Positions 23,994 to 55,526 of a stretch of DNA of 64,000 nucleotides are shown here, piece after piece; position 1 is the first letter of the stretch, and each line of letters opens with the position of its first letter. Source of the stretch: Octopus sinensis (lineage: Eukaryota). Made by a program: the position numbers and the translations under genes. Location: the NCBI RefSeq assembly GCF_006345805.1, contig NC_043025.1, positions 9,176,001 through 9,240,000 on the forward strand, written 5' to 3'. Under the pieces are notes generated by a model that ran no database searches, was not told where the DNA came from, and saw only the letters and a list, made by a program, of their open reading frames with translations.

Positions 23994-24065
23994 AAATTTC
24001 TGGAATAATCAGATCACAACCATCCAACAAGGGTCCTTTCAAAATCTTCCAAGTTTAAAGAAATT
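23994..24065 (+). CDS. 72-nt internal exon A encoding one leucine-rich repeat (host LRR gene, identity unknown)
   Basis: Pyrimidine tract ...ttttatgtttcAG | A AAT TTC TGG AAT AAT CAG ATC ACA ACC ATC CAA CAA GGG TCC TTT CAA AAT CTT CCA AGT TTA AAG AAA TT | GTaagt. It reads (L)NFWNNQITTIQQGSFQNLPSLKK(L), fitting LxLxxNxIxxIxxxxFxxLxxLxxL. Exactly 72 nt, symmetric phase 2, as in LGR/Slit-type LRR exons. Confidence 0.88.
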
Positions 24066-25109
24066 GTAAGTGATTAAGTTTTTTTATGCTAATTTATTTA
24101 CGAAATTTTTCTAGGGATACCATGTCTTCTCATCTTTCTTTTTCTCTCTGTATCTCTAACGTATATTCCGCTACCATATTCGTGTTGGAGTGTGTATGAA
24201 AGTCCCTGCAATTGTTTGTGTCTGTATGTGTTAGCATCAATGTCTAACATTTTGTGCATAAGTGTACGATTGAATGAGAATATATATGTTTGTATTCGTT
24301 TCTATAGCTGGGTATATTATGAAATACGTATTTATGCAGAAGTCGTTTGAAAAAATTATACACACTTGGAAAAAAAAGAAAAGAACGTATAGAAATATAT
24401 TCGTTCTCACCTTTTTGAGATGCTGCTTCATTGATATGAGTTATTTTAAATTCTACAATTACAAGAGGTGCCTAAATTGGAAGTCGTCATTTTCTGTTTG
24501 TACAGTGAGCTACAGCTGGGGCAATTTGGTCAAACTGTCCAGTGTGATGGCTTCTTATGCCGTTTCAGTTTCTTTAGGAAGGAAGTTAGAGTAGTCAGTC
24601 GTCCACAATATAAGACAATGTTTGGTGTGTCCCTCGTACGTTTGTCTTTAAGTGTAATGATATTACTTACGTTGATATATTTTTACTTTCATTTCTATCC
24701 TCATTCGCAATTGTCATATTGTTTTGCTTGTCCATCTTGTCTGTTTTCTTGCTACTATCTTTTCTTAATCATCGACTTACTCGTTGTTACTGATTTTTGT
24801 TGTTGTCGTTGTTGTTGTTGTTGTCGTTGTTATTGTTGTTCTTATAATCGACCCGAGTGAAACCGAGTTTATTGAGCGAGTTGCTTTTGGAAATGTCAAT
24901 TGATGAGAAACATCTGCATAGAAAGATGCACCGCGGCAACTCGACCATTATCTCATCCGTGAGGGGCTGATTGAAGACGGGTTGAAACGGCCGTAGTGAT
25001 TAACGAATCCCGTAAAATCAATTTTCCATTTCCCTTATGTGTGTGTATGCGTGTGTGTGTGTGTGTATGTGTGCATGTGTGTGTGTGTGAGTATACGCTT
25101 AGACGTTGG

Positions 25110-26430
25110 TATGGCTGTGTGATAACAATTTTGCTTCTGTACTCTGTCCCTCTGCGTGTACTCTGGTCTTCTCCTTTCTTCTTTTACTACTTTTCCTATT
25201 ATAGGTTCCTCTATACACTTCTCTGAGTCTGAGGCCTTCTCTTTCTCCGTCTTCAGTTTCTCCATCTCACCCTCTTGTAGTTGAGTTCCTGAATCTTCCG
25301 TCAATTCACCTGTCATCTTCATACTTGCTTCCTCCTTCTCTGACTCATTATCACACACCTTCTTAATTATTTTTTAACTTTCCTTTCCCACTCTAGCGTG
25401 AATTCTCCTTCCGCTGTTTTCTGATTATTCTCGACACCCTCTTCAGTCTCTCTCTGCTCCCTCCGTTGGCATCTCGCATTCATGTGTCCCTCCTCGCAAC
25501 ACTCGAAACACACAAGCGGCTTGCTTTCCACCTTCACACCCAGTGCAACACTATCTCCTCTGCCATTCCGTTCAAGTCCTCCACTTTAGCCTGGATTGTT
25601 AGCTCCAACCCACAGCCCCAGCAGCTTGTTTGCTCTGGTGGCCCTCAATATTCCAGCCTCGTCCTCCATGTTGTACACAATGGCCGTCATCAGCCATATC
25701 TCCTCCAGCTCAGGGGGCACCTGGCCCAACCCAACCCTCGCCACACGTTCGCCGCAACAGGATGGCAGAAGAATCCATTCTTCTGAGCGGACCGCCTCCG
25801 TAGCATGCCTCATCGCTTCCTCCTCCGATGTGAAACGCACATCCATAGTTGCATACTCCCTGCATCCTGTTCCGAAGGTTATCATCCTTTCATGCCTTCC
25901 AGCATCCTCTCGATCCCCTCCACAGTTGCTATCTCGATCCTTCCTGTAGCGACCCTCACAGTCCTGTATGTCACTGTCTTCCTCATAACGCTGTTCATTA
26001 GCTCCTCGGGTGGTGTCAATTTCATCTTCTCGCCTTCCCCCTCAGCAGCCTATCGCCAGCTTTCATCCTCCTGGCCTCGACCTCTACTTCAAAAGTGTAC
26101 AATGTTTCTCTCCCCGCTTCTCCTCCAGTTGCGACTGCACAGCTATGGCCGCCCGGTGGCGCCTTCTCCATTTTCCCCAATGGGAAAAATCAACTCAACA
26201 AAACTTTAACGATATTAACAACGATATTAACAACAGCAACAATCAACAATAAATTCACGTTCCACTCACAAATACAACTCAACTTCAACAACTCGACCTC
26301 AAAAACAACACCTATCAACTACAAAATTCTATACTCAACTCGACTCTACTTCGACGTCTTGACTTCTCCCTCTATATCTACGTATTGAACAAGCCTACTT
26401 CATCGTCTGGGGGTGTCCACACAACACAAG
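25110..26430 (-). mobile_element. LINE ORF1-like (gag-like) element with CCHC knuckle, no ORF2 (copy 1)
   Basis: KVESKPLVCFECCEEGHMNARC = CX2CX4HX4C, followed by an E/K-rich tail. Broken frames; no RT or endonuclease downstream. Confidence 0.7.
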
Positions 26431-27829
26431 TAAACTAGAGAAGATTGGCACATACATACATACTTGCATATATATATATATATATATATATATATATATA
26501 TATATATATACCTAATGAAGAATAGGAGAATGGTATCAGCGACTTTCTTTATTCTATATCAATGCAATTGTCTACACATCACATCCGTAGTTCTTGATGA
26601 GATGATATAATTTACATCGTGTGTCGTCAGTACAATTCCTTAAGGGTGGAACGTAGGACTTATTGAAATAATCACCTGAAAATCATGTTTTACACCTCTG
26701 ATAGATGGTAAGGATTACGCAATTTATTAATTACATCATCTGAACCATGTACAATGGTTGTGAAATCATGTAGTAAAAATTATAGTATTATGGAATAAAG
26801 AATATCGTTTAATTCATTCCCTCTTATTCACCTCTGTTTAAACACATAAGCGAAAAATGAAAGAGACACAATTTCTCCACAAAGAGAAAAAAAACGAGAT
26901 ACAACAGATATTCAAAACGCTTTAGTAACAGTTTTCCACGCGGGTTTCGAAATCGCAAATCCGAATCGCCATACAATATCACCATACACATAGCAGTTGC
27001 TGACGTCACCTAACTCTAAAACAATGAAATTTAACTTACAATCAAAATCGAACTTCAGCAAATACAACAAAATTACCCTTTAAGAGAATCAACCAACTGG
27101 AATGGCTGATGACCGTTCCCCACAGGTAAGCCAACCAGGCAGAATGAAATCTTGACCACCAGAAAAATAAGACATCAACGAATATCAAATCCCTTCACGG
27201 AAAAAAATCGTAAATACACCGGATTCTAAAAAACACCATTACAAGCAAAAGATCCTGCACATGTCGGTAAGAGAATCACAGAAACTGTAAACAAAAACCC
27301 TTCTTTCACTATCTTCGTTTCTCCCTTGTTTTTCTCCCTCTTAACTCAGTATGGCCGAAACTTTGAAACACCACATTTCTTATCGATCACTACAAACACT
27401 ATTGAATTTTGTGCATTTGAGCAAAATGATCCAGATTTTTTTAAATATATTATTGAATGTTATGAACATTTAAAATCATACTTCATGTTACCGAAACTTA
27501 TAAACATAAAAACATGTTTTTCTAATTCATAATTTTAAATTATTACCATTGATAAACAAAAATATAATGTTGAAACTAGTTTGGTATATATATATATTTA
27601 TTATTTATTTTATTTTATTTTATCTAGTTTCAGCTAACGAGCTGTGGCCATGCTGGGGCACTGCCATTTAATATAAATATATTTATTTAAAAACAAATAC
27701 ATATTTTTCAAATTTAGGTGCATTTTCAACAACAAATTTTCCTATAAACTTTGCTGCATGGAAATACAACGCCTCTTTTGCTATATATATATATATGTAT
27801 ATATATATATATATATATATATATATATA

Positions 27830-54410: not shown

Positions 54411-54662
54411 TTTAGCATATATATATATATGTTTGCGTTTGTCTGATGTGTGACTATAGTACTTGTATTTATATTCTTTTATTCCCACTTCTTTCCCTAT
54501 TCTGATATAACACGTTATTTTTCTTGTCCTAATATATCTTGTTTTCCTGCATTTATCGTCTTCATCATAAATTTTTCTCTACATTTATCTTATTCATAAT
54601 TTTCTGGTTCTTCTGCTTTTAATTTTTTCAACTGCTTTCTCCTCTCTTCATGAATCATTTTC

Positions 54663-54830
54663 GCTTCTTCTTCTTCTTCTTCTTCTTCTTCTTCTTCTTC
54701 TTCTTCTTCTTCTTCTTCTTCTTCTTCTTCTTCTTCTTCTTCTTCTTCTTCTTTTTCTTCTTCTTCTTCTTCTTCTTCTTCTTCTTCTTCTTCTTCTTTT
54801 TCTTCTTTTCTTCTTCTTCTTCTTCTTCTT
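54663..54830. repeat. (CTT)n microsatellite, about 55 units
   Basis: Direct reading. The paralogous site at ~50335 has only a few CTT units. Confidence 0.95.
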
Positions 54831-55454
54831 CACTATATTTATCCGTTCTATGATTTATTTTCCCTCACCTTCTTCGTTATTCTTATCAATTTCTAATTTT
54901 TCATCACATCTTTCATCATCATCATTGTCACGATCGTTACAATCATCATCATCATCATCATCATCATCATAATCATCATCATCATCATCATCATCATCAT
55001 CATCATCATTATCATCAGTATCATCTTCAGCGCTATCATATTTATAGTCTCTCTGCTAATCATATTTTCGTATTCACTAATCGTTATAATTTATCCTGTC
55101 ATCATGACTATTTCCTTCCACCATTTACTCTGCTATTTCTAGCATGCAGAATCATCATCACCTTCGTTATGAACATCATAATAATCAACGTCGTCATCAC
55201 CAATTAATCGGTAGCGTTTCTCATCGTTTTCGATAATAATCATCATCATTATCCCCCTTTTCCTTCTCACCGTCATTATTACAACATTTACAATCAACAT
55301 CGCAATACTCCTCATCATCATCATGAACATCATCTCGGCCATTTTCTCATTCACCGTCCTCTTTTTATTAATATCATTCTAAAGATACAAGATTTAATAT
55401 TGTATAAGAAATCTTTTTAATACTCTTTCTTTTGGACTGTGTTTTATGTTTCAG

Positions 55455-55526
55455 AGATCTCAGTAGGTGTAAGATCAGAATCATCCAAAAAGGATCCTTT
55501 CAAAACCTTCCAAGTTTAGAGGAAAT
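55455..55526 (+). CDS. 72-nt LRR exon D
   Basis: atgtttcAG | A GAT CTC AGT AGG TGT AAG ATC AGA ATC ATC CAA AAA GGA TCC TTT CAA AAC CTT CCA AGT TTA GAG GAA AT | GTaagt = DLSRCKIRIIQKGSFQNLPSLEE(I/M). 72 nt, open, same phase. Confidence 0.85.

Follow-up and report, generated by a model that had tools for sequence, protein, structure and literature searches.

The window, by which we mean the whole 64 kb stretch of Octopus sinensis DNA analysed here, contains four leucine-rich repeat (LRR) exon cassettes, all on the + strand and each 72 nt in length, starting at positions 23994, 37991, 50847 and 55455. All four have (t)tttcag immediately upstream and gtaagt immediately downstream, and each is bounded on either side by a phase 2 intron, with the first base of the exon completing the previous codon; the codons split at exon joins read TT|A (Leu) and AT|A (Ile). 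The flanking introns are also homologous, across 0.5-1.2 kb. Identity from unit to unit is 78-84% within the window, and 81-96% against the units of two related loci, one from O. vulgaris (L002) and one from O. bimaculoides (L003). The exons and the unit that carries them are as follows:

23994..24065, + strand: LRR exon e1 (NFWNNQITTIQQGSFQNLPSLKK+L), phase 2-2, tttcag/gtaagt borders, HMM E 1e-17
37991..38062, + strand: LRR exon e2, recently duplicated from e1, which it matches at 71/72 bases with one A>G change (K>R)
50847..50918, + strand: LRR exon e3 (DFDTNKITTIQEAAFQNLPSLRC+L), HMM E 3e-15
55455..55526, + strand: LRR exon e4 (DLSRCKIRIIQKGSFQNLPSLEE+I), with Cys where the repeat has Asn
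23683..24843, + strand: conserved intron-exon unit around e1, recurring at 37681-38840, 50420-51062 and 54417-56766

Conceptual splicing of the four cassettes yielded four canonical LRRs in frame, and the resulting 97 aa peptide matched LRR_8 (E 3.3e-27) and LRR_4 (E 2e-18) in Pfam. The repeats are of the extracellular type, being tandem units of 24 residues that read LxxLxLxxN/CxL followed by xxIxxxxFxxLxxL, and the exon borders fall within the beta-strand motif (LxxL|xLxxNxI). An HMM built from four, and later eight, exons matched exactly these four sites in the window (E 1e-15 to 1e-19), the next match for a further 72-nt LRR exon having E > 1 and the minus strand giving none, whilst a lax AG…GT/LRR pattern scan of the window returned only noise apart from the same exons. 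The four-cassette signal in the window is far beyond chance. An initial annotation of this DNA had described four exons of equal 72-nt length with phase 2-2, AG/GTAAGT signals and homologous flanking intron, all of which we verified at the positions above, and its in-frame splice peptide was reproduced by our conceptual splice. Its description of the cassettes as invisible to the list of open reading frames is not strictly true of e3, which lies within a 111-aa stop-to-stop ORF. Given the symmetric 2-2 phase, skipping of any cassette would keep the frame.

All four cassettes are genuine LRR exons, but e1 and e2 are not independent of one another, as both lie inside a single 13,988-bp tandem duplication whose copies differ by 0.22%. 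Identity between their flanks is complete across 300 bp on each side. The duplicated segments and the repeats of the window are as follows:

19479..23185, + strand: intronic repeat P1, with the decayed remnant of a PIF1 helicase (Helitron-type) at 20144-21102, minus strand
23186..33391, + strand: body of the duplication, copy 1, with copy 2 at 37174-47373 (25 mismatches in 10,174 aligned bases, 16 indels)
33392..37094, + strand: repeat P2, a hybrid at the duplication junction, with a P3-type 5' part and a P1-type 3' part
47374..50251, + strand: repeat P3, upstream of e3, with 92-94% identity to P1 and internal deletions relative to it
51765..54181, no strand assigned: left arm of an inverted repeat, with its right arm at 60462-62930; the arms are 91-99% identical and bracket e4

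The helicase remnant in P1 matched PF05970 (E 1e-12) and PF21530 (E 1.6e-3), and Pfam analysis of 20 long stop-to-stop ORFs of the window returned only PIF1-helicase remnants and low-complexity matches. Decayed mobile-element remnants are abundant around the cassettes. The left arm of the inverted repeat is not present at the homologous place of O. vulgaris L002.

The structure of P2 is informative as to how the second exon arose. Its 5' part differs from P3 at 5/1416 positions and from P1 at 58/1415, its 3' part differs from P1 at 0/2132, and the informative sites run 3333…1111, i.e. with a single switch, located at ~34839-34939. This geometry is exactly that predicted for unequal crossing-over between P3 and P1, and the e1/e2 unit of exon plus intron was therefore apparently gained by crossing-over between homologous intronic segments, given a correct assembly. 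The initial annotation had proposed that exons are added when an exon is copied together with its intron, and this is thereby substantiated at e1/e2. Alternatively, the pair could be an artefact of assembly, produced by a loop through the similar P3 and P1 or by the stacking of two haplotypes, in which case the true exon count would be three. A distance of 0.22% between copies, with 16 small indels in 10 kb, is in the range of heterozygosity or long-read consensus error, and O. vulgaris has just one P-Q unit in the segment homologous to it; against this, the window is gap-free (0 N), P2 is the clean one-switch hybrid that unequal crossing-over should give, and the A>G change between the exon copies looks real. 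We consider an artefact rather unlikely.

Collinearity of the window with Octopus vulgaris OX597843.1:20.59-20.69 Mb (L002) extends over tens of kb of non-coding DNA at 88-95% nucleotide identity, which bears out the cephalopod origin given in the initial annotation, and includes the following block:

1..1390, + strand: block collinear with the 3' end of L002 (99948-101418), 93-95% identity, resuming at 10868-11583 past a 9.5-kb insertion

Paralogous units within O. vulgaris are 93% identical, as close to each other as the window units are to those of O. vulgaris, and the window may be orthologous or paralogous to L002. Two placements remain: it may continue L002 as the following unit downstream, or it may be the equivalent of L002 51-97 kb. 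The 72-nt length, phase 2-2 and tttcag/gtaagt borders were common to 4/4 window exons and 5/5 exons of the O. vulgaris and O. bimaculoides loci. In the O. vulgaris model CAI9744556.1, exon 50239 is joined to exon 92055 as phase 2 predicts (…SLKKI|YLYNN…), and in the O. bimaculoides model XP_014780238.1 (P0243) an exon encoding signal peptide and LRRNT (L003 10001-10201) is joined to two 72-nt exons; both models are truncated, and consecutive exons are joined in each. In their intron flanks the window units share 82-88% identity with the P0243 LRR exon Ob_3. The O. vulgaris units Ov_a and Ov_c match e4 at 93-96% in the flanks but at only 74-76% in the exon itself. Exon loss was also evident, L002 63200-63491 retaining the upstream flank of a unit without its exon, so that exon number changes by loss as well as by gain.

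Comparison of exons with their introns pointed to selection. Three unit pairs, w_e4/Ov_c, w_e4/Ov_a and Ov_a/Ov_c, had introns of 0.89-0.98 identity in 100-bp bins to ±500 bp, and mostly beyond to ±1 kb, whereas exon identity was only 0.74-0.78 (Fisher p of 5e-7, 3e-5 and 8e-5; binomial P of the exon divergence arising at the intron rate, 3e-8 to 2e-5). In the closest unit pairs dN/K(intron) was 4-6, and all 17 of the 17 exon differences between w_e4 and Ov_a were nonsynonymous, dN/dS being based on 23 codons per pair. Over eight exons, the concave x positions held 5.0 distinct residues compared to 2.35 elsewhere (p = 7e-4), whilst scaffold positions were hydrophobic, Asn or Cys in nearly all, position 18 being looser (L/V/C/H). 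These sequence comparisons statistically support diversifying selection on the concave-face residues, with scaffold, exon length, phase and splice sites held; structural knowledge of LRRs suggests that the concave face would bind ligand. Selection on the cassettes had been claimed before, and with exons 4-6x more diverged than introns and scaffold and splice sites kept, the claim now has stronger support than it was originally given. The affinities of exon and flank disagree, and part of the high exon variability might stem from homogenisation of the introns, or from the swapping of exons, instead of selected point substitutions.

The same comparisons bear on whether the array is dead, with the cassettes being either left over from an LRR gene that was disabled or broken up, or units copied with intronic repeats, and in both cases now unspliced. 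Such a reading is in keeping with the lack of a containing product in the protein collections searched, the exon-less homologous unit in O. vulgaris and the decayed mobile elements that fill the surroundings. However, a neutral relic should diverge by ~6% like the introns, as opposed to the 22-26% observed in exons, and 9/9 exons are without stops or indels, have intact splice-site bases and keep the scaffold residues in nearly all cases, which makes a dead array improbable. We think it similarly doubtful that the array generates isoforms, i.e. that alternative or mutually exclusive splicing of the cassettes yields many ectodomains from one gene. Phase 2-2 symmetry permits in-frame skips, the proximal intron flanks are unusually well conserved and there is precedent for in-frame skipping of LRR exons in LGR5 (PMC4891500), but no docking/selector-type complementary pairing was found between flanks in a limited test (±750 bp, e1 and e4), consecutive exons are joined in both annotated models, and the strength of the splice sites, with their consensus tttcag and gtaagt, points to constitutive splicing. 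A bolder form of the idea, to which we attach an equally low probability, is a germline 'cassette library', in which recombination would keep introns near-identical while exons are driven apart, individuals would vary in the number and order of LRR exons and transcripts would sample subsets of them. If true, this would amount to a population- and isoform-level repertoire of octopus adhesion-GPCR ectodomains, an LRR counterpart of the expanded octopus protocadherins possibly serving self/non-self or chemotactile recognition.

Annotated members of what appears to be the corresponding gene family were identified in O. sinensis, comprising XP_036369864.1 (P0002; 461 aa over 229 kb) and XP_029651540.2 (P0267; 1566 aa over 209 kb). 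At its N-terminus XP_014780238.1 is similar to P0206, P0267 and P0002, and beyond the LRRs P0002 is similar to P0267 and P0148. GPS and 7tm_2 domains are present in P0267 and P0148, the latter also carrying a Death domain, whilst P0002 and P0206 are annotated without GPS/7tm_2. The window is connected to this family by the homology of its units, in their intron flanks, to LRR exons of P0243, whose N-terminus is of the family type, and by an LRR region of 72-nt phase-2 exons with giant introns, as in L002 and L003. Identity per repeat was rejected as a test of family membership, as octopus LRR proteins could not be told apart by it from those of Mytilus or amphioxus; the assignment rests on intron-flank homology and annotated neighbours. 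P0121 was set aside as an amphioxus protein.

When 383 proteins (LRR, adhesion-GPCR, TLR and others) were compared with the window by tblastn, no exon for LRRNT, LRRCT, EGF, GPS, 7TM, TIR or Ig domains came to light. The spliced peptide, used in word-index searches (candidates of 127-402, 397-1262 and ~800-2540 aa), returned nothing above ~58% identity, and an all-length profile search from single exons found no closer protein, amphioxus LRR proteins dominating the matches. The product of the window's gene is thus absent from the protein collections, and either the gene is unannotated or the exons are unused. Between the two forms of the family, we lean slightly towards the adhesion-GPCR form rather than the LRR-only form. 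The initial annotation's 'LGR-like' label, which would place the gene among the rhodopsin-class LRR GPCRs (receptors of glycoprotein hormones, LGR4-6 or relaxin receptors), is very improbable, for although LGR genes have one exon of roughly 72 nt per LRR and the top solved structure match was the LGR4 ectodomain (1e-48), similar scores for LRRC15 (2e-44), TLR13 (1e-42) and ALS (3e-40), with LRIG1 comparable, indicate a generic LRR gradient in which the spliced peptide is not specifically closer to LGR ectodomains than to LRR proteins at large, and the relatives linked by N-terminal, post-LRR and intron-flank homology carry, where full-length, the GPS and 7tm_2 of the adhesion class and not 7tm_1.

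We therefore favour, as the likely explanation, that the cassettes are working coding exons situated mid-way in one giant-intron LRR ectodomain gene of the octopus LRR/adhesion-GPCR family, and that the array evolves by gain, loss and diversification. Such a gene would encode an extracellular LRR solenoid with one 24-residue repeat per 72-nt exon. By analogy with the family layout, a signal peptide plus LRRNT exon would be followed by a long array of 72-nt LRR exons (introns 3-46 kb) and an LRRCT-like Cys region, and in full-length members by a GAIN/GPS and 7tm_2 adhesion-GPCR body. Unequal crossing-over of homologous intronic segments would add units of exon plus intron, as proposed for e1/e2, deletion would remove them, as seen in O. 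vulgaris, and diversifying selection would alter the solvent-exposed concave residues with the scaffold held.

The closest known systems are the octopus LRR adhesion GPCRs and their LRR-only relatives, which have the same 24-residue repeats with a ...GxFQNLPxLxxL signature, encoded by phase-2 exons of 72 nt whose splice borders are also the same, in giant-intron genes of 209-229 kb. The P0267/P0148-type architecture agrees with the description by Ritschard et al. 2019 of group 3, an octopus-specific set of adhesion GPCRs, for whose co-localised members they reported positive selection (PMC6408891). Unlike these relatives, the window's product is not among annotated proteins (best 50-58% identity), and the window contains no LRRNT, LRRCT, GPS or 7TM exon, so that the class of the whole gene is inferred. 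The 'type I LRR exon' ROCO genes of Ectocarpus also encode one LRR per symmetric-phase 72-nt exon and vary in exon number (Zambounis et al. 2012, PMC3341825); positive selection is reported at sites in the LRR domain, and the authors argue that one exon gained or lost is one structural unit gained or lost (PMC3341825). Those, however, are intracellular ROCO GTPases of a brown alga with exon borders in another repeat register, and the non-coding strand of their introns holds numerous LRR exons, some intact and some inactivated, whereas none occurs on the minus strand of the window, L002 or L003.

Vertebrate LGR4/5/6 and glycoprotein-hormone receptors likewise build an LRR ectodomain from a run of small exons, and LGR5 has in-frame isoforms without LRR exons (delta5, delta8 and delta5-8; PMC4891500), but these receptors have a rhodopsin-class 7TM and a fixed LRR number conserved across species, and they lack hypervariability of exons compared with introns. 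Lamprey and hagfish VLRs resemble the window in having arrays of LRR cassettes with diversity mainly on the concave face. VLR cassettes, though, are not exons and are somatically copied into an incomplete germline gene, while every cassette of the window has tttcag/gtaagt splice sites and nothing suggests somatic assembly, which sets the window apart from VLRs. Arthropod Dscam1 similarly diversifies its ectodomain with tandem duplicated cassette exons of the same phase, but these encode Ig half-domains and are spliced mutually exclusively by docking/selector RNA pairing; in the window there is no conserved inverted complementarity around e1 or e4 (±750 bp), and the annotated relatives splice consecutive exons.

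The array thus reveals no new kind of system, the design of one LRR per symmetric 72-nt exon with a variable number of exons (PMC3341825), unit gain by duplication, and in-frame skipping (PMC4891500) having been published. Nor can it be called 'hidden' or an 'undescribed system', as the initial annotation had it, since 72-nt phase-2 exons are already spliced in CAI9744556.1 and XP_014780238.1 and the family is annotated in O. sinensis. Its value lies in the growth and change of a repeat receptor being caught at three stages within 64 kb: an exon unit whose apparent duplication, via crossing-over in intronic repeats, dates to the last 0.2% of sequence divergence, older units whose exons have diverged 4-6x faster than their introns at presumed ligand-facing positions, and, in a related genome, a homologous unit minus its exon. 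Unspliced donors in the family all read directly into a stop codon. In combination with introns of 10-40 kb, these read-through stops probably cause octopus annotations to split family genes into short, misnamed fragments, and as a consequence the expansion of octopus LRR adhesion GPCRs, and selection on it, is probably underestimated.

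Four 72-nt exons, each encoding one LRR, were identified in the middle of a giant-intron gene:

23994-24065, + strand, LRR exon e1 (72 nt; (t)tttcag before, gtaagt after; phase 2 on both sides)
37991-38062, + strand, LRR exon e2 (72 nt; (t)tttcag before, gtaagt after; phase 2 on both sides)
50847-50918, + strand, LRR exon e3 (72 nt; (t)tttcag before, gtaagt after; phase 2 on both sides)
55455-55526, + strand, LRR exon e4 (72 nt; (t)tttcag before, gtaagt after; phase 2 on both sides)

The phase follows from the first base of each cassette, which is the third of the preceding codon, at both borders. 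Conceptual splicing of e1-e4 yielded the predicted peptide LNFWNNQITTIQQGSFQNLPSLKKL-NFWNNQITTIQQGSFQNLPSLKRL-DFDTNKITTIQEAAFQNLPSLRCL-DLSRCKIRIIQKGSFQNLPSLEE, which matched Pfam LRR_8 (E 3.3e-27). HMMs built from the exons and run against six frames of the window recovered e1-e4 only (E 1e-15 to 1e-19; next match E > 1), with no LRR exons on the minus strand. The adjoining introns were homologous across 0.5-1.2 kb, confirming the initial annotation both in its four phase 2-2 cassettes with shared splice signals and in their related flanks. Approximately 300 bp upstream of each exon (23700-23990 for e1, with equivalents for e2, e3 and e4) was ATC-rich and CT-rich and 83-98 % conserved between units (exon plus flanking intron), above the conservation of the exon itself; this stretch could contain elements that control splicing, or its conservation could simply be a product of concerted evolution.

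Padded word-index searches in three length classes and a single-repeat profile search across all lengths returned no protein near-identical to the spliced peptide, the best matches being generic mussel and amphioxus LRR proteins, along with a few from octopus. The window was collinear with O. vulgaris OX597843.1 (locus L002, 102 kb), with tens of kb of non-coding sequence aligning at 88-95 % identity, which places its source within Octopus. Paralogous O. vulgaris units were 93 % similar to each other, as similar as the window units were to them. L002 carried three exons of the same format (4390, 50239 and 92055), whilst an O. bimaculoides locus (L003) carried two, downstream of a signal-peptide and LRRNT exon. 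The gene models at both loci, CAI9744556.1 (L002; 151 aa; …SLKKI/YLYNN…) and XP_014780238.1 (L003; exon 1 > 22205 > 25680), splice as phase 2 predicts. CAI9744556.1 (L002 10001-92129) carries the name 'cyclin-dependent serine/threonine-protein kinase DDB_G0292550' yet comprises an Asn-rich low-complexity N-terminus and two LRR exons, and the kinase name is evidently wrong. All exons end in …TT/GTAAGT or …AT/GTAAGT (window 24063-24071, 38060-38068, 50916-50924 and 55524-55532; L002 92125-92130; L003 25750-25754), such that a donor left unspliced reads TTG or ATG followed by TAA, an immediate in-frame stop. Both the O. vulgaris and O. bimaculoides models stop exactly at such a donor TAA, indicating that current annotations of this LRR-exon family are truncated after an LRR exon.

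The N-terminus of XP_014780238.1 matched three family proteins, P0206 and the O. sinensis proteins XP_029651540.2 and XP_036369864.1, and the Cys-rich region following the LRRs of XP_036369864.1 matched XP_029651540.2, P0206 and a further family protein, P0148. XP_029651540.2 (1566 aa) and P0148 (1283 aa) carry GPS and 7tm_2 domains, P0148 also a Death domain. This architecture is that of the octopus-specific, co-localized and positively selected adhesion GPCR group reported by Ritschard et al. (PMC6408891), for which axial nerve cord, suckers and skin are the sites of expression. The O. sinensis relatives occupy 209 kb for 1566 residues and 229 kb for 461 residues, sharing the giant-intron layout of the window. 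No further domain exons were found within the 64-kb window besides the LRR exons, and we therefore infer the ending of its gene, whether a 7TM body or that of an LRR-only relative, from these relatives. In O. sinensis (GCA_006345805.1), the 229-kb XP_036369864.1 gene is overlapped on the opposite strand by a 1088-residue LRR, GPS and 7tm_2 gene that extends past this locus; family members are thus nested or interleaved on both strands. The label 'LGR-like' was not upheld, as LGR4 headed the PDB matches but LRRC15, TLR13, ALS and LRIG1 followed closely.

Nor did the proposal of an undescribed system survive comparison with the literature. As in the window array, each symmetric 72-nt exon of the Ectocarpus ROCO genes encodes a single LRR, and in those genes exon number evolves and LRR sites are positively selected (PMC3341825). 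LRR exons of LGR5 are skipped in frame (PMC4891500), and the expansion of LRR-bearing adhesion GPCRs in octopus, under positive selection, is published (PMC6408891). With exon design, skipping and expansion all described, the window gene is a new and apparently unannotated gene of a previously known type. Somatic assembly is unsupported, since every cassette carries splice sites. Dscam-like exon choice is likewise unsupported: a search of ±750 bp around e1 and e4 found no flank complementarity and, in contrast to Dscam-like selection, annotated octopus relatives join consecutive exons. What the array adds is a sharp view of how single exons are gained, lost and diversified.

Taken on its own, the window gave an ambiguous selection signal, with exons 71-76 % identical, upstream flanks 83-93 %, downstream flanks 73-80 % and dN/dS about 1. 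The selection claimed in the initial annotation became clear once octopus loci were added. In the three closest unit pairs (e4/Ov_c, e4/Ov_a and Ov_a/Ov_c, where Ov_a and Ov_c are units of L002, and window and L002 units may be orthologues or paralogues), identity was 0.89-0.98 per 100-bp bin to ±500 bp, and mostly beyond, falling to 0.74-0.78 in the exon only (Fisher p = 5e-7, 3e-5 and 8e-5 against ±300-bp flanks). Nonsynonymous divergence was 4-6 times intron divergence in these pairs, each offering few codons, and all 17 exon differences between e4 and Ov_a were nonsynonymous. Across eight distinct exons, a mean of 5.0 different residues occurred at each of six concave-face positions (x2, x3, x5, x7, x8 and x10 of LxxLxLxxNxL; exon residues 22, 23, 1, 3, 4 and 6) versus 2.35 elsewhere (p = 7e-4), whilst almost all exons kept L/F/I/M, N/C and F at the scaffold positions. 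A decaying relic could not outpace its introns yet spare all structural and splice positions; protein-level selection for diversity therefore acts on the exons, or did so until very recently. The exon of Ov_c (L002 92055) was nearest e1 (60/72) and its flanks nearest e4 (94 % vs 85 %), which hints at exon-scale conversion or swapping among units; intron homogenization or exon swapping may therefore contribute to the exon-intron contrast.

Exons e1 and e2 lie within a tandem duplication with a period of 13,988 bp, the bodies of which differed at 25/10,174 positions. A repeat of ~3.7 kb holding a decayed PIF1-helicase remnant is present upstream of e1 (P1), e2 (P2) and e3 (P3). At sites distinguishing P1 from P3, P2 was P3-type to ~34.84 kb (5' part: 5/1416 differences vs P3, 58/1415 vs P1) and P1-type from ~34.94 kb (3' part: 0/2132 differences vs P1). 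An assembly loop through these similar repeats would also yield a second copy, but we consider this rather unlikely. Judged by its distinguishing sites, the P2 hybrid appears to be the exact product of unequal crossing-over, whereby misaligned chromatids would have exchanged between P3 and P1 to leave an extra exon and intron unit, and at 0.22 % the duplication is probably very recent. If correctly assembled, this tandem copy with its hybrid junction bears out the idea that duplicating an exon with its intron adds one LRR.

Units also get lost, as indicated by an exon-less flank in L002 (63200-63491). This 'ghost' still has the sequence that precedes an LRR exon (87-93 % identity with window 23706-23926) and lacks the equivalent of window 23927-24786, comprising e1 and ~720 bp; a 5.2-kb insertion lies immediately upstream. 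An inverted repeat (51765-54181 and 60462-62930; segments 91 % and 99.3 % identical) flanks e4 on both sides and matched no Pfam domains. Its left arm is missing at the homologous O. vulgaris place, and recombination between the arms would flip e4. Window 1391-10867 is a 9.5-kb insertion relative to L002 100381-102129, within which a Pif1-helicase 2B-domain remnant (4399-4980, minus strand; E 2.8e-16) represents a decayed Helitron-type element.
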